Shown here: positions 120 to 9,849 of the stretch, piece after piece
Numbering within the stretch: position 1 is the first letter of the stretch
Layout of the letters: each line of letters starts with the position of its first letter
From: Guillardia theta CCMP2712
Taxonomy: Eukaryota; Protista; Cryptophyta
DNA: 64,000 bases
Assembly: GCF_000315625.1 (NCBI RefSeq)
Contig: NW_005434673.1
Span: 1,256,011 to 1,320,010 of the forward strand
Direction: 5' to 3'
Program-made: the position numbers and the translations under genes
The notes under the pieces: generated by a model
Told to the model about the DNA's origin: nothing
What the model saw: only the letters and a program-made list of their open reading frames with translations
Database searches by the model: none

Positions 120-1086
120 CTACTCACATCAGTGTTCGCATCCCTTGACCAGCATGCTTCTGGGGTTGGCTCTGAATGAGATGTCACGCGGGAGTAGAGG
201 AGGAGGAGAAAGAGGAGGAGGGGAGGGCAAGGGGAGGGGAGGGAGGTAGGATCAAAGGGGGAGCGAAGCAAGCGGGGAAGAAGAGGAGGAGTGAAAGCTG
301 GGCGGAGATAGGAAGGAGTGCTGAAGGAAAGGAGGATAAGAAAGCACCTGGATACAGGTAGGAGCAGGAGAGCTTGACTTGAGGAGGATGATCAAACCAG
401 TAACGATTGATCTGAAGAGAAGGGAAAGCGGTGATACATGTAAGGGCAGAAAAATGAAGATGCGAATTGAGGTGGGTAGAAGGGGAGGGGAGAGGAGAGG
501 GCAGAAGAGGGCAGGAGAGGAGAGGAGAGGAGAAGAAAGAGAGGGAAAGGGGGGAGGATGGTAGAAGCAAAGCAGCAGGAAAGAGAATAGAGGGAAGGGG
601 AGGGGAAGGGGAGAAGGGAGATGAAAGAAGGAGTAAATCAATGGATGGAAGGTTATGAGTTCGCGGTGGGAAAGGAGAAACAGCAGCACCTGACTCTCGT
701 CATGAAAAATGGCAACAATGTCTTCCTCGAGATCTCTGCCAACAAAGAAGGAGCAAGAGAAGTCAAACAGGGAAGGACCAAGGAAGGGAAGGCAGAAGGA
801 AGGGAAGATGGAGAGAGGAGAGAAGGAGGGAGGAAAGGAGTGGAGAAGGGAATGGAGCAGAGGGAGGAACATGGTGAAGGACAAGATAGTTTGAGGGGAT
901 CGAGCAACAGAGGCAGAGGACGAGAAAGGAGATGAGAGCAGTGGGGAGGAGAGCAGGGGAAGGAATATGGTTGCGAGTATCAACTCACTGGTTCGTCCTC
1001 TTGACAAGTTCTTTGAGCATCTCAAGCACCTGCCCGGCTACTTTGTTACCTCCTCCTCCTCCTTACAACCCTCCTCATTCTTCTGT

Positions 1087-1131
<45 letters not shown>

Positions 1132-1516
1132 CCTCTTCTCTTCCTTCTCACCTTCTGGCTCCTTCCCCCATAGAAACCTCCTGCAAAGTAATGCCTGCCT
1201 TCCCCAGCTCGCATTCCAGCTGTGGACTAACGAAGGGAGGAGGTCAGGTCGAGCAGGAGGAGCAGTTCCTACCTCCTCCCGCTTCTCGTACACGGCTCGA
1301 GTGACCAGCGCCGCGTTGCCTGCACAGGATGCGAGTTAAGGGGAAGTAGCAGGAAGGGAGAGGAAGTTAGGAGCAAAGCGAGGACGGCGAAGGGGAGAGG
1401 ATCGTAGTGAGGAGCAAAATTTGAGGCAGTAGAGGCAGCAGAAATATTAGGATTGATGATGAGTACAAGGAGGAGCAGGAAGAAGCAGAGGAAAAGGAGA
1501 GAGGAGGGCGAAACAG

Positions 1517-1555
<39 letters not shown>

Positions 1556-4500
1556 AGGGCGAGGGAGAGGAAGGCTCAGGATGAGACACCATGATGCTGT
1601 CGCCACATGGTTCCTGGCTCGGCATTGACTGACCATGCCTTTTGGAAGCGTCCAACAACCTGAAGAGTTCTCAGAGAGGGGAGAGGAGAGGGAAGGAGAG
1701 GAGAGAAGGAGAGGAGAGAAGGAGAGGAGAGAAGGAGAGGAGAGGAGAGGAGAGGAGAGGAGAGGAGAGGAGAGGAGGAAGGTAAGAGATAGATAGGGAA
1801 AATCAAATATTTGCAGTCAAGCTATGTTTGCATTGACACTATGATTGATATCACTGAGGAGGGAGAAGGCGAGAAGGAGGAGGAAGAGAGAGAGACGGAG
1901 CTTTGACCTCACTGCCGTCATAGAATGCGTTGTCGGCATGCAAAGTTCCAACAGTTTCACCTGATACGCAATGTGGATGAGTAGAGAGGGGCGGTGAAGG
2001 AGGAGGTGAAGACAAGGATGCGACGGGAAGTAGGAAAGCGTTGGGAAGGGAAGAAGGGCAAGATGAAGCGAGGAGGAGAGAAGCAGACTGGAGGAGACAA
2101 GAAGGAGACGGGAGGAGGGGGGAGAGGGGAGTGAAGAGGAGGGGAGGAGAGGGGAGGAGCAAGGATTTGCAAGCAGAGTGGAAGAGTAGGCGTCGTCAAC
2201 ACCGAGGATTTCTTGTGAGACGTAAGAGACGAAGGAAACATCTGAAGCGCAAGTGAGGAGGAGGAACAACAGAGGTGACATGCTCAGCACTACCGACATC
2301 GACAGCAAACACATAGTCCATAGCTCCCCATAGCTCCGCGTGCTCTAGGTAGGAATGGGCGCGTCTGACAGCAAGCATGAAATGGATTGAGACTGGTTCA
2401 TCACCTACTTCATCGATGCTGATGGCCACCCGTCATGCTTCCTGTAGACAGCGTGGACCCTCCCGTCCTCCCATGGTCCTGCCAGCGTCTCACCAAGGAG
2501 GATCAGAGGGAGAGAGGGGAGGAGGGAGGAGGAAGAGATGCAGGAAGAGGAGGAGAGAGAAGGGGACGAAGAAAAAGAGAGGAGGCAGAAGAGGAGAAGG
2601 ATGGAGAAGAAGACGAGAAAAACTCTAAAGAGGAAGAGGAGAAGCAGAACAGAAAGGAGGAATGCAGGAGAGGAAGAATGAGGAGAAGGTCTTTTCGTTG
2701 TTGAGGAGGAACCAACTTGTGTCTTTGAGTTGCTCATGCACAGATGAAACCGAGTCTGTGAACACAAAGTAGTGCAGCTCGGCAATATCCTGCAAGCAAC
2801 CTTTCAGCATCAATCCCTTCCCTTCCCTTCCCATGCACAGATCTGAGAGCAGGCCATAAATCTACGATGATGACAACCAACAACATGTTGTATCCAGCAT
2901 CCTCACCCGCAGCAAGTAAGATTCAGCCGAGCTGACTGTTGACCTGTGCAAAAGGGTCACAAGGACGATGCGAAGAAGGTGCAACGACCGAACAAACGAC
3001 GCATATCTTCCGGATGCGACTGTCAGGATCCCAACTTTCAACAGCTGCTGGAACGTTGGTCAGATCTCGAGCTCCTCGACTGGCTGTGACGTTTCACTTG
3101 TGGGGCATGGGGCGTTCCGATGGCTTTCACTGCGACGTGCTTGTCATTGTGCGATCATCTTCTCTGCTACAAGTTTACCTGGACATGCTGCTCTTGCCTC
3201 TAGCCTCTTAGAAGTCTTGTCGTGCCTTGCAGCAGCTTTTCAGGAGTACATCACACTTAAAGTATTCCCTCACATCTCGAACAGCCTGACTTCGTCTCCT
3301 CTGCAAATATGATGTCAGTGGCAAGAATCGGCAGTTTGAGCCATCACGGACCTGCTGTATGTTGCTGAAGAAGCAAGGAAACGTTGGAGGTGCGCAATAC
3401 AAGCATGCGATTCAGCATGTGTTGGTGTATGCCAAATCGCATCTCTGGGATGGTTTGAGCGAGGTCAGAACATATGGAGATGACCTGTAGGCTTGTAGCG
3501 CTCCTATATAGTCCTTCTTGGCCATCAAAACTCTCCCAAGTGCTGCGAAAGGATTTAAATGATGGATGGGAGAAAGAAAGGAGGATCAAGATGAGGTTGA
3601 GAGAAGGACGGTGAGTAGAAGGAGAATGAGTTGTATTAGGAGGAAGAAGAGGGATGCGGCGACAATAATTTTGAAGACATCAGGATATTCTCAACCATTC
3701 TCATGGACAAAATCACGTTAAAACATCTCACATGCTAAAAGCCGTGGCATGGTTGCTCCGGGAGCGTTGGACATAGCAGATATCAGTCGAACATAACTTT
3801 GTTCTACAGACATTGTCAAACCACAGCGCTATCACCTGACATCTCACGACCTGACAAGTCCAGCTGGCCTCTCTCGTAATGCTGCTCATAGTCAACAAGA
3901 CATTTATCTTCATGTAACGAACTCTTTCTCACTTGAATTGCAACTCGTTCCATGTCATCGATTGTTGTCACGTTAGACAAGATGTTGACCTGATGCATCC
4001 TTCAGTCTCCTTTCTTCTCTTCCCTCCCCTCCCCTCCCTTCTTCTCTTTCTTCCCTCCTCCTATCTCTCTCCCTCTCCTCACATGCTCGGTATCATCCAG
4101 ATCCGGCGCCAGCATCCCATCGCCAACATAGAAGAATTCCTGAGCAGTCCGACCCTTAGTCTCATCATCACCCCATCATCGTCATCACCACACTATCATA
4201 CGCAACCGCCTCGTCCTCCTCCGTCAGTTGTACCTGGCGAACCCTCACAGCAACGAAGACGCTGCTCTCTGCTTACCTCCATCACATGATACCCTACTTG
4301 TAGCTGCGACATCTGCAAGCTGACCGCCCGCTCCTCCGTTCGGTACACCTCACGGCCATCCATGTACAGAATGACTCTGAGAGTAGGTCACTGTCCGCGT
4401 ACTCCAGCGCTCCTCCTCTCTCATCTCCTCCTTCCCTCCTTCCCTCCTCCCTCCCTCCTCCCTCCTCCCTCCTCCCTCCCTCACCTCGATCCTCTCCTGC

Positions 4501-4701
4501 TGCTCATGGCAGAGACTTCCAGTGGAACGACGTCTCCCTGCATCCACCTGAGGCCATGGTACGGACTTGAAGGAGCTTCACCCGCACGCGCTCCCCGTCC
4601 TCGGGTCTTGTAATGGTCACAGCCACGTCCTGCGAGTCGGTCCTATCCTCCGCTCCTCTCGCTTGCAAGAGCAGGAGGAGGAAGAATATAAGCCGCCGCA
4701 T
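120..4701 (-). CDS. Secreted or membrane glycosyltransferase family 6 (ABO/alpha-1,3-Gal(NAc)-transferase-like) with an uncharacterised N-terminal region; multi-exon, 3' end may run off the window
   Basis: Signal peptide MRRLIFFLLLLLQARGA at ATG 4701. Spliced exons give, in order: KVGILTVASGRYASFVR-STVSSAESYL (~2900-3045), ELHYFVFTD (~2760), WPSASMK-RAHSYLEHAELWGAMDYVFAVDV-DVSFVSYVSQEILG (2200-2470), ETVGTLHADNAFY (~1930), YEKREE-STAGMRAGEGRHYFAGGFYGG (1165-1295), DIVAIFHDESQ-INRYWFDHPPQVKLSCSYLYP (345-740). These are colinear with ABO motifs HYYVFTD, VDVD, GTLHP, YERR, YYLGGFFGG and WHDESHLNKY. Confidence 0.88.
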
Positions 4702-4726
4702 CGCTTTCCTTCTCTCCCCCTGCAAT

Positions 4727-6110
4727 CATGCGAGAAGGAGAAGACTGGAGAAACGACAAGGAGCAGGAGGGCAGGAGCAGAAGGCTGAGAGGAGGAGCTG
4801 TAAGGTAGGGTTCTGCCGATTCTGCAGCTTGAGCTGTTGACTGCCTTCACTGGGACGAAGAGGAGGGAGGGAGGGAGGGCAGGGAGGCGAGGGAGGGAGG
4901 CGAGGGAGGGAGGCGAGGGGANNNNNNNNNNNNNNNNNNNNNNNNNNNNNNNNNNNNNNNNNNNNNNNNNNNNNNNNNNNNNNNNNNNNNNNNNNNNNNN
5001 NNNNNNNNNNNNNNNNNNNNNGTGAAAGTCCACCGAGTACAGCATGAAATGGACGCCGGGGGGAAGGGAGGGGGGGAGGGGGGGAGGGGCAGGGGAGGGG
5101 GGAGGGGGGGTTAGGATGAGTCAAGGATCGAGGAAGCAAACGAGTGCTAGACCTGATCCCAACTCTTCACTAGCTTGTTCTACACTCTTGCCATCTTTCA
5201 CCATCAGTCTTGTCCCATCCTTGTACTTGTTGCCTTCCTCCTCCATCGCTCTCCTCCTGATGCCCTCATCCTGTGCTCTACCTGCTCGCACCCGTCCTCC
5301 ATCTGACCATCCATGCAGCACAGCGTCTTCATCCACATGGCTCATCCTCATCAGCGGTCAAAAGCTGCGGAGGGAAAGGCACTAGATGCAGAATCTTAAT
5401 AGTGATCAAAGACAGCTAGAAACCAATCCAGGGCTGATGAGCTCAAATTTCGGCTTGAGATGAAGGAGTCATAGCCCTAGTTAATGATATCCTGCTGATG
5501 ATAGCTCTTTTACAACATCTGCTAGAAGCAACTGCGAACATTTGTGGCTACGGTCATCTGACGGCAGCCACAAGTGACATCTGACCTGATACCTCGCAAT
5601 GGATCGCTGAAGACAAACTAAGTGGATTGAGGATGGATCATGAGAGAATGGCACCGACACAGACACATAACAAATCGACGATGTCGAGCACCATCATCGT
5701 GTCGTTTCAATGTCTTCGAGATGTAATTGGAATCGCCCAAGACAAGGCCTTTCAAAACGATCGACTGTGACATCACACTCCTGATAGAATTGTAGATGAT
5801 TCACATCATGCAATCAGGTGAGTAGGAAGTAACAGCGGGCAGGAGGAGCTGGAGCTAACATGAGTTTGCGAGATTCTTCTCCCTTTGAAGGATCAAGCCG
5901 ACGTTTTCTCGCAAGAAGAATGAGCGACATGTTCTTCGAGAGAACCAACTGTTCGATTGATACAAATTGTCTACGAGTATGTCACGTTGGTTTATTACAA
6001 GCTTGTTGATATTGAACAATTTTGTGTCGCTCTCTAGATTCGCACATCCATCCCTCTCGTAGGACATCAGGAGCGTTCGCCACCGCGGCTCTCCTATCCT
6101 AAGTCGAGAG
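4727..6110 (+). CDS. Possible spliced gene of unknown function, spanning an assembly gap
   Basis: Several GT..AG intron-like segments and open exon-like stretches (e.g. SRRFLARRMSDMFFERTNCSIDTNCLR). No recognisable domain; strand and structure uncertain. Confidence 0.25.
4922..5021. other. Assembly gap (100 N)
   Basis: Run of N. Confidence 1.
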
Positions 6111-6134
6111 CAAAGGCTTCGATGCTTCTTAAAG

Positions 6135-6647
6135 TTACTCGAGGAAGTACCGCCCTGAAAGCCTCCCCTCCTGCTCTGAAACTTCCAATACATCCCTCAT
6201 ATCCATTACTGGTAGACTGTTCCCTTCCACCTGCATACTGCCTTTCCTCCGATGGAAGGTCGGGAGCCTGACGCTCGTGAAGTTCCCGTCCCGGCTGATG
6301 GACTTGGCCAGGCACGCCCGCGCGCTCTTCCCCAGCCTCTCGTACGCTCCTCCGTCCGTCAGGCTGCCGTGCTGGTCGATGGATCGGAAGTGCGGGCCCT
6401 TGCACACCACGCCGAGGAGCCAAGCGGGGCAGGATCGATGGGTGAGGGTGATGACGGGGGCGGAGTCGGGGTCGGGGAGGGAGACGCTGGAGCAGCTTGC
6501 GGAGAAGGGTCCTCGGGCCCAGCTTTTTCTGCGTCTGTTTTGCTGTTCAAAAGAGAAGGAGCGGGAGGAGGGGGTAGGGCAGACGAGGGTGCATCGTCTG
6601 TGAGAGGGATAAATGCCATGATGGCTAGATCGGAGCGAGGGAGACAT
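6135..6647 (-). CDS. Orphan small-protein family, copy 1 (~170 aa, intronless)
   Basis: Frame ending RLSGRYFLE*. Differences from copies 2/3 outside the core are largely synonymous or conservative in this frame (CTT/CTA, CTC/TTG, TAA/TAG, CGC/CGA, AGA/CGT, GAA/GAC). Confidence 0.65.
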   Translation of the reverse strand: MSPSLRSSHHGIYPSHRRCTLVCPTPSSRSFSFEQQNRRRKSWARGPFSASCSSVSLPDPDSAPVITLTHRSCPAWLLGVVCKGPHFRSIDQHGSLTDGGAYERLGKSARACLAKSISRDGNFTSVRLPTFHRRKGSMQVEGNSLPVMDMRDVLEVSEQEGRLSGRYFLE

Positions 6648-7019
6648 GATGTTGCGAGAGGAGACAAGTGGGAGAGACGAGGAAAGGGGAGGGTGGCAAG
6701 GAACAGATCAGAGCTTGCTTTAAGAGGGAGGGTGCAGGGGCGGGATAAGAATTAGTGTTTTGGAACTGGTTTCTTGTCAGCAAGTCACGAGGGGCCTACC
6801 AGTGGAATAAAGCAGTCACGCGTACAAACTAACTTAACGTCAGCACTTTGCGAGATGACCGGAGATCCTTGCCGACGTGACCGGCTGTCTTGCGACGGTC
6901 AGAACTGTCGCCACATTTAACTAATCCTGATCGTGGTACAGCGTTAAGCCCAGTTTTTTATCAGTTTTTACCTATATCCACCGTCCTGACAGGCTCTGAG
7001 TGACATGAGATGTTAAAAC

Positions 7020-7480
7020 ACTGGGGCACGAGTAGCACCTGCGGCATCACACTGACTGGTCACGGTTTGACTGATATCTGGCTCGCAGAGTCCCGGACTC
7101 GCCGTGAACGGAGGCAGGCTGAGGCCTGCTGATCTCGTGACTCCGAGGCTCTCCGGCGGCTGACCTTGGCAACTTAGCTTTCGTGCTCCCGTGAGCCATG
7201 CAAAAATCATGCGGCTGGATGGCCTCATAAAGAAGGCCTCATGATGATGGTTTCCTTGTTTCCAAGTGAAGTTTTAAACTGAGTTCTTGGCCCTGCTAGC
7301 CTGTCCGTCAAAGTGAACGCCGCTGCGGGCCGCCCGGCGCCCTTTGTCCGGCCTGGGTACCGTGCCGTAGTACGCCGAGGCTCGTGCGGTACTAGCGGCA
7401 TTACCACTTGAAGCCTGAAGCCTGCCACTCACTCCCTGGCACCGCACTGGCTGCCGCAGTGCCAGCCTGCAGTAGGTCAC
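7020..7480. repeat. GC-rich intergenic island (palindromic-word class)
   Basis: Shares words CTCGTGAC, GAGGCTCTC, GGCAACTT, CGTAGTACG and GGTACCG with 9850-10800. Confidence 0.5.
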
Positions 7481-7653
7481 GCCTTAGCAACATTGGAATG
7501 CTGCAAACGATGTCATCAGTAGGCGAACTTCAAGACAGTGAGCCTTGACGGATCTATCAATCGATCAGCCCCCAGATCACATGATGGCGTGACAAGGTCA
7601 AAGTTCTGTCAGTTGAAAGTCTGACACGTTCTTAAGTCGTTTTATTGAAAGCC

Positions 7654-8184
7654 CTACTCCAAGAAGTACCGCCCTGATAGCCCCTCCTCCTCTCCCCCTT
7701 CATCGTACGGCGCCTCCTCCCCGTTGCTTCCCTCTCTTGTAGCTACGCTGCTCCCCTCCCGGCCCCCGCACTCCAGCTCCTGATGGAAGGTCGGGAGCCT
7801 GACGCTCGTGAAGTTCCCGTCCCGGCTGATGGACTTGGCCAGGCACGCCCGCGCGCTCTTCCCCAGCCTCTCGTACGCTCCTCCGTCCGTCAGGCTGCCG
7901 TGCTGGTCGATGGATCGGAAGTGCGGGCCCTTGCACACCACGCCGAGGAGCCAAGCGGGGCAGGATCGATGGGTGAGGGTGATGACGGGGGCGGAGTCGG
8001 GGTCGGGGAGGGAGACGCTGGAGCAGCTTGCGGAGAAGGGTCCTCGGGCCCAGCTGCTACGTCGTCTTTGGGACTGGTCGAGGGAGAAGGAGCGGGACGA
8101 GGGATCAGGGCAGGCAGGACGCGCGGAGTTGCGAGCAGTCTGGTTGTTCTTTTCGCGGCGGCAGGCGCTAGCTGTAGCAGGCAT
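7654..8184 (-). CDS. Orphan small-protein family, copy 2 (176 aa)
   Basis: ATG-initiated ORF MPATAS...SSRSFSLDQ...WLLGVVCKGPHF...SVRLPTFHQ...GLSGRYFLE*. AATAAA lies just after the stop. Confidence 0.7.
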   Translation of the reverse strand: MPATASACRREKNNQTARNSARPACPDPSSRSFSLDQSQRRRSSWARGPFSASCSSVSLPDPDSAPVITLTHRSCPAWLLGVVCKGPHFRSIDQHGSLTDGGAYERLGKSARACLAKSISRDGNFTSVRLPTFHQELECGGREGSSVATREGSNGEEAPYDEGGEEEGLSGRYFLE

Positions 8185-8899
8185 CTATCGATTGCTTTGA
8201 CCACTTTGATCGATCGTATGTTTTGCAGGAGTTTGAGCACAAGAGAAGAGCAGAGAAGCGAAGCAGAGCAAGCGGGATGCGGGATTGGTTTCTCTTCCGG
8301 TCAGCTTGGGATATCACAGAGGAGCAAAAAGGAGGCCGGGGGGGAGGGTCCGTTGTTAAAGCCGCAGTTAAGACCTGTCACGGAACAAGTAAATGGCCCC
8401 ATGCACCTCTCATTTAATGGTGCCCCTCGCCTTCCGGTATTTCCCTCAGTGAGGCGGACTGCCTCGAAGGCGAGTCGTCCGCGAGCAGAGGCAAGTCAGC
8501 CTCAGCGGCTGACGTCACCCTGGTGGAGTCCATGGCAACCTGCGCAGCGCGACAGAAGTCGGAGCCGCCGCTTCAGTACTGTGACGATCATCGCCAGTAT
8601 CTGCGATGAGTCGATCGATGAGTCTGGCCAGCATATGGCTCTGGGCCTTTTTACTCTTCACGGTAGCTCGCGGCATTGGCTTCTTTCCTGACACGAGTCC
8701 GACAGCACTGAGTGCTTCTTTCTTCTCAGCATGCTTCAATGATCTTCGATTCTCCATGAGGCAGCCCATGTCGTTCAGGTTGCCGCCGATTCGGCAGATC
8801 AGTCGTTACTAGGATCTCGCTCCTGTCGATTTTTGCTCATCAAGTCCAAAGAAACAATTCATAAAACAAATACAAGGCCGCTCTGCTTCCCGGTGCCCC

Positions 8900-9038
8900 C
8901 CGGCAGCTGCTCTTCTACCAAGCTCATACTAGACCAAAACAGCCTCCTACTGTAACCGATGTATCGCAACAAATCACCACCGCCCAGAGCTGACACTGTA
9001 CCTCTCTCCGCTCTGATCCCTCCTCCCGCTCCTTCTCC
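8900..9038 (+). pseudogene. Inverted 5' fragment of orphan family copy 3
   Basis: 8942-9038 is a reverse-complement match to 9502-9580 (gcctcctactgtaaccgatgta...tgtacctctctccgctctgatccctc.tcccgctccttctcc), with indels and a stop. Confidence 0.75.
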
Positions 9039-9072
9039 GCTCACACGTTCTCAAGTCGTTTTATTGAAAGCC

Positions 9073-9582
9073 CTACTCCAAGAAGTACCGCCCTGATAGC
9101 CCCTCCTCCTCCCCCCCTTCATCGTACGGCGCCTCCTCCCCATTGCTTCCCTCTCTTGTAGCTACGCTGCTCCCCTCCCGGCCCCCGCGCTCCAGCTCCT
9201 GATGGAAGGTCGGGAGCCTGACGCTCGTGAAGTTCCCGTCCCGGCTGATGGACTTGGCCAGGCACGCCCGCGCGCTCTTCCCCAGCCTCTCGTACGCTCC
9301 TCCGTCCGTCAGGCAGCCGTGCTGGTCGATGGATCGGAAGTGCGGGCCCTTGCACACCACGCCGAGGAGCCAAGCGGGGCAGGATCGATGGGTGAGGGTG
9401 ATGACGGGGGCGGAGTCGGGGTCGGGGAGGGAGACGCTGGAGCAGCTTGCGGAGAAGGGTCCTCGGGCCCAGCTGCTACGTCGTCTTTGGGACTGGTCGA
9501 GGGAGAAGGAGCGGGACGAGGGATCAGAGCGGAGAGAGGTACAACGGTTCTGGGCGGGTACATCGGTTACAGTAGGAGGCAT
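9073..9582 (-). CDS. Orphan small-protein family, copy 3 (~169 aa)
   Basis: MPPTVTDVPAQNRCTSLRSDPSSRSFS...GLSGRYFLE*. Nearly identical to copy 2 over ~9044-9528. Confidence 0.7.
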   Translation of the reverse strand: MPPTVTDVPAQNRCTSLRSDPSSRSFSLDQSQRRRSSWARGPFSASCSSVSLPDPDSAPVITLTHRSCPAWLLGVVCKGPHFRSIDQHGCLTDGGAYERLGKSARACLAKSISRDGNFTSVRLPTFHQELERGGREGSSVATREGSNGEEAPYDEGGEEEGLSGRYFLE

Positions 9583-9849
9583 GGCAAGCGCATGCAGGAA
9601 GGAACAGGTGATGTAGAGCTGTTTTGAAGCAAGAAGACCAGTACTGTGAGCTTGGCAGGAGAAGGGCAGAGGGGCAGCGTGAAGCACAGTGGTGATGAAT
9701 TTTTGATTCGAGGGGAGGGAGAGGAATTTTTGTCAGCAGGTCACGAGGGAGTTATAAGTTGAGACCTTTTTCTCCGTGTCATGGTGCGATTGGGTGGCCG
9801 TAAGGAAGTTTGAAGGTCGTAATGTTTCATGCTGACGGTCGAACCTCGT

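Follow-up and report, generated by a model that had tools for sequence, protein, structure and literature searches.

The window analysed here, 64,000 nucleotides of a 1.42-Mb contig of Guillardia theta CCMP2712 (contig positions are given below with the prefix C1), carries on its minus strand a gene for a GT6 (ABO-type) glycosyltransferase. This confirms the observation made in an initial annotation of the same DNA; the find is solid, though modest. The ABO, alpha-Gal and Forssman antigens are products of GT6 enzymes, a family whose patchy distribution has been explained by horizontal transfer. Judged from its sequence, the locus is very probably a real nuclear gene of about 23 exons, which would encode a retaining glycosyltransferase of the GT6 family (ABO / alpha-1,3-GalT type) of approximately 520-535 residues. 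At least four GT6 loci, this one included, occur in the genome.

Inside the window, the catalytic domain is spread over 14 short minus-strand exons, running from 3047 to 128 and tiled in order (exons 7 to 20); all are flanked by AG and GT splice sites, and their phases agree throughout. About ten short exons had been proposed initially; the multi-exon domain stands, but the count does not. Exon 7 (2989-3047; acceptor gttccag/, donor CG/gtcgtt, the slash marking the junction) encodes QLLKVGILTVASGRYASFV plus CG and lies at positions 5-24 of a family HMM in a six-frame search and 8-20 in the tiling. After a 45-nt intron, exon 8 (2907-2943; G plus STVSSAESYLLR; ttgcacag/, /gtgagg) matches ...DPLIESARRYFF of the relatives without gaps. 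It is followed by exon 9 (2717-2789; DIAELHYFVFTDSVSSVHEQLKDT plus A; ttgcag/, A/gttggt; profile 36-52), exon 10 (2409-2478; GA plus PWEDGRVHAVYRKHDGWPSASM plus AA; ctggcag/, AA/gtaggt; profile 57-73) and, beyond a 44-nt intron, exon 11 (2294-2364; A plus RAHSYLEHAELWGAMDYVFAVDV plus G; donor G/gtagtg), in which 23 of 23 residues align to profile 75-97 and from which the DVD motif takes its D-V and the opening G of its second Asp codon. This Asp is completed (G/AT) by exon 12 (2203-2241; AT plus VSFVSYVSQEIL plus G; acceptor cttcag/AT; profile 100-110).

An algal-type insertion begins in exon 13 (1908-1960; GT plus ETVGTLHADNAFYDGSE), which also encodes the conserved His; this exon is the best single-exon HMM match (26.3 bits, E=5.9e-7 within the window) and is 61-83% identical to algal-type relatives. 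Across the intron 1907-1660, the insertion goes on in exon 14 (1590-1659; VVGRFQKAWSVNAEPGTMWRQHH plus G; ctcttcag/, G/gtgtct), whose MW.Q motif matches ...GTMWLQ / GKMWLQ of the relatives P0002/P0003. Exon 15 (1273-1319; GC plus NAALVTRAVYEKREE; gtgcag/, /gtagga; profile 171-181) is separated by a 46-nt intron from the donor-pocket exon 16 (1152-1226; STAGMRAGEGRHYFAGGFYGGRSQK; cgttag/, /gtgaga), which has AGG at ABO 266-268 and scores 19.3 bits with the family HMM. Then come exon 17 (989-1029; VLEMLKELVKRTN plus CA; gggcag/, CA/gtgagt; profile 208-217), exon 18 with the catalytic Glu (690-735; A plus DLEEDIVAIFHDESQ; ggcag/A, /gtgctg; profile 221-234), exon 19 (348-411; INRYWFDHPPQVKLSCSYLYP plus G; cttcag/, G/gtgctt), with 21 of 21 residues aligned to profile 236-256 at 15.8 bits, and exon 20 (128-171; AG plus PTPEACWSRDANTD), which ends in a strong donor, GAT/gtgagt, and is not the last exon.

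The family HMM was built from five PF03414-positive proteins (profile length 284) and used to search the window in six-frame translation, cut at stops into 2,720 pieces; the six top-scoring pieces all come from minus-strand positions 187 to 3059, follow the order of the profile and sum to about 89 bits. When 13 exon translations were aligned separately, they took ascending, non-overlapping positions within 8-256 of 284 (8-20, 25-30, 36-52, 57-73, 75-97, 100-110, 112-128, 145-155, 171-181, 182-205, 208-217, 221-234 and 236-256). The same profile finds the known enzymes, namely the solved BoGT6a of Bacteroides ovatus (1.4e-43), human ABO (~1e-38) and alpha3GalT (~1e-31). For P0025, a single-domain algal-type relative about 30% identical to the profile members, the predicted model (mean pLDDT 78.5) resembles GTA/GTB and BoGT6a with E ~1e-21, and it folds as GT6. 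Against Pfam PF03414 (Glyco_transf_6; gathering cut-off 25 bits), searched exon by exon, one of 14 pieces matches, the AGG exon (14 bits, E=0.021, profile 214-240), and the other 13 gave no match as single-exon queries, while a genome-wide six-frame scan recovered paralogues on contigs C4 and C12 and missed the locus studied here. Such poor matching of most single exons is what chance similarity, or bacterial contamination of the assembly, would give; this explanation can practically be dismissed, as the 13 collinear matches are set amid spliceosomal introns full of microsatellites of the host genome, the 1.42-Mb contig carries neighbouring intron-bearing genes, and three paralogues occur in the same genome. 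The collinear tiling effectively refutes it, and together with the collinear HMM matches it bears out the initial proposal of a multi-exon GT6-family gene in an alga.

Upstream of the catalytic domain, six exons encode an N-terminal region of about 200 residues. The first exon is ambiguous: a tentative candidate (4517-4701) begins at the ATG at 4701 with the signal-peptide-like MRRLIFFLLLLLQARG... and ends at the donor AA/gtctct in phase 2, and an alternative starts at the ATG at 4543 and ends at AG/gtgagg at 4485, without a signal peptide, the two being equally phase-compatible with exon 2. Exon 2 (4277-4376; A plus VILYMDGREVY...GYHVME; ctctcag/A, /gtaagc; phase 2 in, 0 out) has no homologue and no Pfam match. 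It is followed by exon 3 (4083-4139; EFFYVGDGMLAPDLDDTEH; gctcag/, /gtgagg; phase 0/0), exon 4 (3851-3989; VNILSNVTT...GQLDLS plus G; gcatcag/, G/gtcgtg), which has nothing significant in Pfam and within which 3932-3882 may be a further intron of 51 nt, in frame, exon 5 (3485-3542; CA plus LGRVLMAKKDYIGALQAY plus AG; ttcgcag/, AG/gtcatc), whose phases chain with exons 4 and 6 and which gave just a sub-threshold TPR_2 match in Pfam (E=0.055), and exon 6 (3274-3364; C plus NIQQVRDGSNC...SQAVRD; cttcttcag/, /gtgagg; phase 2 in, 0 out). Over the whole region no domain was detectable, the Pfam output being sub-threshold noise, and no homology was found to the N-termini of relatives. A signal-peptide-bearing region fused in front of the enzyme had been described; the signal-peptide-like start exists at the ATG at 4701, subject to the ambiguity of the first exon, but the layout resembles the anchor and stem usual in Golgi transferases more than a fused module.

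The 3' end of the gene lies beyond the window. A full catalytic domain had been placed within 120-4701, with the gene ending near 120, but its last ~60 residues are encoded beyond the window. The intron that leaves it begins at 127 (127-1, minus strand) and adjoins a stretch of 1,212 N (C1:1254799-1256010), which interrupts the gene just before the window, and the gene continues past this stretch. Three minus-strand exons lie about 1.4-2.0 kb outside, one supported and two probable. The supported one (DCVRDEGHPWLWSPWKPSQLDG; C1:1254521-1254586) has an HMM E-value of 1.9e-6 and, read with exon 20, places C, R, D, H, P and W in the register of the C4 paralogue (E...16 residues...C.RD..HPW). The two probable exons, KDVIWDKALWK (C1:1254304-1254338) and YRRFTIRCLNLSKNRY...stop (C1:1254047-1254134), are suggested by splice phase together with the W....W and (V/T)(P/I)R(I/C)LN(L/V).K registers of relatives. 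They give a candidate basic C-terminal tail, …RRFTIRCLNLSKNRY…, in phase and in register with the relatives' VPRILNLAK.K; a dedicated tail HMM on these last two exons was not significant (E ~40-60). About 1 kb separates the proposed stop from the start of the next same-strand gene.

Other ends were considered and rejected. The apparent last exon of the initial annotation (…ISFRANPRS… / …ISFRANPRSMLVKG…, with a stop near 130) is out of register with relatives; the terminal frame with …ISFRANPRSMLVKG… cannot be entered, since the coding strand offers no AG acceptor from 252 to 172, and use of the alternative acceptor two bases downstream would remove everything between YLYP and the tail. The stop at 113-115 was likewise set aside and the GAT/gtgagt donor at 127 preferred, because the next exon restores the register with the C4 paralogue.

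Four GT6 loci are found in the G. theta CCMP2712 genome, the paralogues lying on contigs C4 (EKX54020.1, GUITHDRAFT_100270), C12 and C119. A CAZy table of 2018 gives three GT6 genes each for Guillardia theta and Goniomonas avonlea (PMC6260743); that cryptophytes have the family is therefore not news. New here are the evidence for four loci rather than three, the apparent absence of the studied copy from protein databases, and the corrected structure of about 23 exons, which crosses the N stretch and leaves the window. No protein encoded by these exons was returned when the paralogue domain was the database query, none of ~160 retrieved relatives proved to be encoded here by tblastn against the locus, and no protein from the locus came from database searches with the INRYW exon in its stop-free stretch (candidates of 94-299 aa) or with an alignment in which each exon formed a row of its own (279-887 aa). 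The copy is probably unmodelled in the databases, since no database protein with these exons was found.

Would a missing protein point to a decaying or silent paralogue of functional GT6 genes on other contigs? A pseudogene would agree with the lack of any annotated or transcript-derived protein with these exons in a collection that contains G. theta proteins, and also with several weak donor sites, the ambiguous first exon and the unknown sequence that interrupts the gene. Yet about 20 exons are open, in phase and bounded by canonical splice sites, all catalytic motifs are intact, and the assembly gap alone could explain the missing gene model. The share of the locus's 31-mers was 0.11-0.24 in ten sequencing runs guessed to be RNA and 0.06 in an eleventh, which matches the 0.138 expected if the proposed exons alone are present, against 0.47-0.89 in DNA runs. 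Decay of the locus is distinctly unlikely.

The catalytic motifs are where they had been reported. DVD is encoded by 2303-2294 and 2241-2240 (GTC GAT GTC G/gtagtg...cttcag/AT) and is split by a 52-nt phase-1 intron (2293-2242), the break falling within the second Asp codon. The proposed catalytic Glu lies in FHDES (710-696, exon 735-690), and HYFAGGFYGG (1193-1164) supplies the donor-pocket loop Y-x-[266]-G-[268]-x-x-G-G with the triplet AGG, that is, Ala/Gly at ABO 266/268 as claimed. Their significance was judged against the closest relatives listed from a search of 1.84 billion proteins, of which about 155 cover the motif; these are mostly short (median 269 aa, 90/157 of at most 300 aa). 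At the DXD position they have DAD (95), DVD (49), DID (7), DSD (3), DCD (1) and DAN (1), with no NXN among the ~155 listed. Calling the DVD vertebrate-style was therefore an overstatement, as DXD is kept in all but one of these relatives, and a DXD clade of GT6 from prokaryotes and phage has been described (PMC3516806). The metal-binding DXD is the form seen in vertebrate and clade-1 GT6, with NXN in many of the bacterial enzymes. AGG is similarly the commonest triplet among the closest relatives listed (67/158), the default of this group and no special "roomy" adaptation; DXD and AGG appear as family defaults, not vertebrate hallmarks.

The Phe that replaces Trp before HDES is rare: among ~150 closest relatives listed WHDES is found in 112, VHDES in 11 and FHDES in just 4. 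An algal-specific insertion of ~30 residues comes after the conserved His (HADNAFYDGSE…MW.Q). In ABO structures both places are beside the acceptor site. The classical H antigen is probably not the acceptor.

In the mechanism proposed for the enzyme, an N-terminal signal or anchor would direct it into the secretory pathway, the two Asp of DVD would hold Mn2+, which would in turn bind the diphosphate of the UDP-sugar, the HDES Glu would act on the anomeric carbon, the transfer being retaining (alpha-linkage), and the candidate basic C-terminal tail (…RCLNLSKNRY) would close over the donor.

As for the donor, there is an appreciable, if minor, likelihood that an active enzyme takes UDP-Gal or another UDP-sugar and makes no A- or Forssman-like epitope. 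Such a choice would sit well with the two-residue difference beside the conserved His (LHADNAFY here against LHPGFY), with an identity to ABO-type enzymes of just ~26-30%, and with AGG being simply the family default. The 266/268 code was moreover set in the scaffold of the human enzyme and one bacterial motif disagreed with it; the published AGG cases are nevertheless A-type, i.e. GalNAc (PMC5377540), and BoGT6a, which carries AGG, has structures with UDP-GalNAc. Yamamoto et al. 2014 (PMC5377540) give AGG as the triplet of the pig A gene and of A-type (GalNAc) genes in bacteria, and because the literature ties AGG to GalNAc, UDP-GalNAc is a reasonable guess; it is predicted from the motif to be a likelier donor than UDP-Gal, with confidence about evenly balanced.

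That blood-group-A or Forssman-like glycans occur on the algal surface is speculation. The fullest version, in which this copy, split by the gap and absent from the published genes, adds alpha-GalNAc caps (A-/Forssman-like) to glycans of the surface or periplast and the intron-rich DXD algal GT6 clade is an old eukaryotic lineage, is unlikely as a whole; if true, such a lineage would matter for the proposal that the ABO family arose by transfer from prokaryotes to vertebrates. No assay of any cryptophyte GT6 was found in the literature searched, and an assay of donor and acceptor would, as far as that literature shows, be a first.

Among known systems, the C4 paralogue and algal-type metagenome/MMETSP proteins (P0001, P0155-P0159) are most similar, sharing DVD, the HADNA(F/Y)YDGSE...MW.Q insertion, the C.RD..HPW.W motif and, by the candidate last exon here, a tail of the form (V)PRILN.AK, with ~47% identity over aligned profile columns, summed over exons. 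The C4 gene differs in being intronless over a 1,076-aa open frame, in an extra C-terminal domain of ~450 aa, the like of which was not found in the 12 kb downstream of the gene studied, and in having YSG/VHDES in place of AGG/FHDES. With human GTA/GTB and the pig A transferase the gene shares DVD, the Glu of HDES and the GG..GG donor loop, AGG being the pig A motif. Identity to these enzymes is ~26-28% at family level, and the gene differs from vertebrate GT6 in the ~30-residue insertion after the His, in Phe rather than Trp before HDES, in far more numerous introns and in an N-terminal region that is unrelated.

Among solved structures, BoGT6a (PDB 4AYL/4AYJ) matches the family profile best; its structure title names it a blood-group-A synthase. 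It carries ...YYAGGLSGG, and its GEGRYYYAGGLSGG closely resembles GEGRHYFAGGFYGG of the gene studied, YLYPE being common to both. It differs in being minimal (246 aa), in lacking the algal insertion and in having NAN in place of DXD, and it is metal-independent (PMC3961637). DXD is kept in the minimal GT6 proteins of cyanophage P-SSM2, Parachlamydia and marine metagenomes (clade 1; Pham et al. 2012, PMC3516806), although these have a single domain (220-270 aa) and lack introns, the algal insertion and the long N-terminal region. Of the non-algal relatives listed in the 1.84-billion-protein search, the closest are short and have DAD or DVD, in many cases together with AGG or CGG; one of them, P0014, has the identical YFAGGFYGG.

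The GT6 locus on the minus strand of the window is a real member of the family and probably a functional gene. In the three minus-strand reading frames, each of its motifs lies in a short open stretch apart from the others (KVGILTVASGRY, ELHYFVFTD, DYVFAVDV, GTLHADNAFYDGSE, HYFAGGFYGG, AIFHDES and NRYWFDHPP). A six-frame scan of the whole genome with the Pfam model PF03414 (Glyco_transf_6) missed this locus on contig C1 (the contig of the window) and picked up two paralogues, on contigs C4 and C12. PF03414-positive relatives were then gathered with the C4 domain as query, and a family profile made from five of them was searched against all six frames of the 64-kb window, cut at stop codons into 2,720 pieces. 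The top six pieces all came from the minus strand (187-3059) and lay at profile positions 5-24, 73-99, 111-137, 183-210, 220-245 and 237-260, matching their genomic order. Exon borders were set by eye from AG/GT sites and phases, and when 13 exon translations were aligned to the profile one by one, they fell at ascending, non-overlapping positions (8-256 of 284). Taken singly against Pfam, only the HYFAGGFYGG exon gave a match (PF03414, E=0.021, 14 bits); the silence of the others is expected, because the pieces are only 12-25 residues long. With the motifs seen and the 13 exons collinear on the profile, the GT6 gene in short exons proposed in the initial annotation is upheld in its main features.

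The GT6 exons are exons 7-10 (3047-2989, 2943-2907, 2789-2717 and 2478-2409), 11-14 (2364-2294, 2241-2203, 1960-1908 and 1659-1590), 15-17 (1319-1273, 1226-1152 and 1029-989) and 18-20 (735-690, 411-348 and 171-128), all on the minus strand and placed by AG/GT sites and phases. The multi-exon structure stands, with 14 GT6 exons inside the window instead of the "about ten" first counted, and the gene continues beyond the window, where its 3′ end had been placed inside. The DVD motif is split by an intron exactly as had been claimed (…GTC GAT GTC G|gtagtg…cttcag|AT…). The GT6 introns come in two sizes: four are very small, at 44-52 nt (2988-2944, 2408-2365, 2293-2242 and 1272-1227, minus strand), and the others measure 117-308 nt and, read on the coding strand, consist mostly of CCT/CCTCC microsatellites; positions 1686-1741 are an intronic microsatellite within the gene.

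Upstream of the first GT6 exon, six more exons with compatible phases form a chain that opens with an ATG at 4701 (MRRLIFFLLLLLQARG…). An alternative first exon, which has an ATG at 4543, encodes no signal peptide and ends at a strong donor at 4484, is just as compatible and leaves the gene start ambiguous. The approximately 200 N-terminal residues showed no likeness to Pfam families or to the N-termini of relatives. An N run of 100 letters, which may be a scaffold gap, is located at 4922-5021, 220 nt upstream of the start codon. Elsewhere in the window, an element is present at 6090-9700 in three direct copies, spaced by 1,531 and 1,419 nt, with 96-98% identity across 300 nt or more. Open frames overlap in these copies on the sense and antisense strands (MEGREPDAREVPVP… / …GRYFLE).

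At the other end, a strong donor (GAT|gtgagt) closes the exon at 171-128. The post-catalytic motif of the C4 paralogue, C.RD..HPW.W, matches an exon at C1:1254521-1254586, 1.42-1.49 kb before the window start (E=0.001 by tblastn; E=1.9e-6 in an HMM search of 12 kb), and when the two exons are read consecutively, C, R, D, H, P and W stand exactly in the register of that paralogue. Two small minus-strand exons, C1:1254304-1254338 and C1:1254047-1254134, the latter with a stop at its end, follow in phase, and their W….W and (V/T)(P/I)R(I/C)LN(L/V).K motifs are spaced as in relatives. They scored without significance in the tail HMM and are therefore graded only as probable parts of the gene. A run of 1,212 N (C1:1254799-1256010), reaching exactly to the window start, lies inside a long intron and splits the gene; it may be a scaffold gap. 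The next same-strand gene starts about 1 kb past the proposed stop, which bounds the 3′ end; a long open frame of about 750 codons (C1:1252977-1250725, minus strand) belongs to it. No second domain of the C4-paralogue type was found in the 12 kb searched downstream.

The family profile detected four GT6 loci in the genome, on C4, C12, C119 and C1. The C4 paralogue, a 1,076-codon open frame without introns, is identical throughout to a protein of Guillardia theta CCMP2712, EKX54020.1 / XP_005841000.1 (GUITHDRAFT_100270). The C12 paralogue is a spliced gene, and the C119 locus (C119:72292-73714, plus strand; 4227-5712 of its local stretch L007) gave only three weak exon matches. The C4 protein (4995-8225 of the local stretch L004) also carries a C-terminal domain of about 450 residues with the motif W.VWSSDMHIGP..DLKQ, conserved in algal GT6 proteins of transcriptomes and metagenomes; a Pfam search gave no match to it, and a protein-atlas feature search pointed only weakly (0.86) towards DUF2827 and glycosyltransferase clusters. 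Three GT6 members have been listed for Guillardia theta and three for Goniomonas avonlea (Cenci et al. 2018, Table 2; PMC6260743). No protein with the exons of the C1 locus was found in any protein search, in a collection that includes the NCBI proteins of the species; hence, this copy is probably unmodelled or badly modelled, and the N run, if it is a scaffold gap, would account for the failure to model the gene. GT6 was already on record for this alga, and the C1 gene is a new and apparently unannotated member.

Each of ten presumed RNA runs contained 0.11-0.24 of the sampled 31-mers of the locus and an eleventh 0.06, against 0.47-0.89 in DNA runs and a share of 0.138 computed for the case that only the proposed exons are present. 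These shares are compatible with a spliced transcript and prove no junction.

Among solved GT6 enzymes, the family profile matched BoGT6a of Bacteroides ovatus (1.4e-43), human GTA/GTB (~1e-38) and bovine alpha3GalT (~1e-31). A model of P0025, a single-domain algal-type relative (mean pLDDT 78.5), had GTA/GTB and BoGT6a as its best structural matches, with low confidence in the algal insertion. By family analogy, it would be a luminal enzyme of the secretory pathway, with DVD holding Mn2+, a retaining transfer using the HDES glutamate and a basic tail closing over UDP. The DVD motif had been called vertebrate-style, a label that is overstated: the approximately 155 nearest relatives covering the position have DAD (95), DVD (49), DID (7), DSD (3), DCD (1) and DAN (1), with DXD thus in all but one and NXN in none. 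These relatives are mostly short proteins (median 269 aa), and phage and prokaryote GT6 enzymes with DXD have already been described as a clade (PMC3516806). On this distribution, DXD is the ancestral GT6 state and not a vertebrate signature.

The residue before HDES is Phe, not Trp, which is rare among the relatives, and an insertion of about 30 residues follows the conserved His. Both places flank the acceptor site in ABO structures; H-antigen should not be assumed as acceptor, and the blood-group-like algal glycans first suggested are speculative. In the C1 gene, the triplet at the donor-pocket positions ABO 266-268 is AGG. This is the triplet seen most often in the closest relatives (67 of 158; CGG in 37), and the donor code was derived in a human enzyme scaffold (PMC5377540), so that the odds of UDP-GalNAc being the donor would be roughly even; the earlier prediction of this donor is reasonable but unproven. 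AGG was reported for the pig A gene, and AGG and CGG for bacterial A-type (GalNAc) genes (Yamamoto et al. 2014; PMC5377540). BoGT6a carries the same AGG triplet as the C1 gene.
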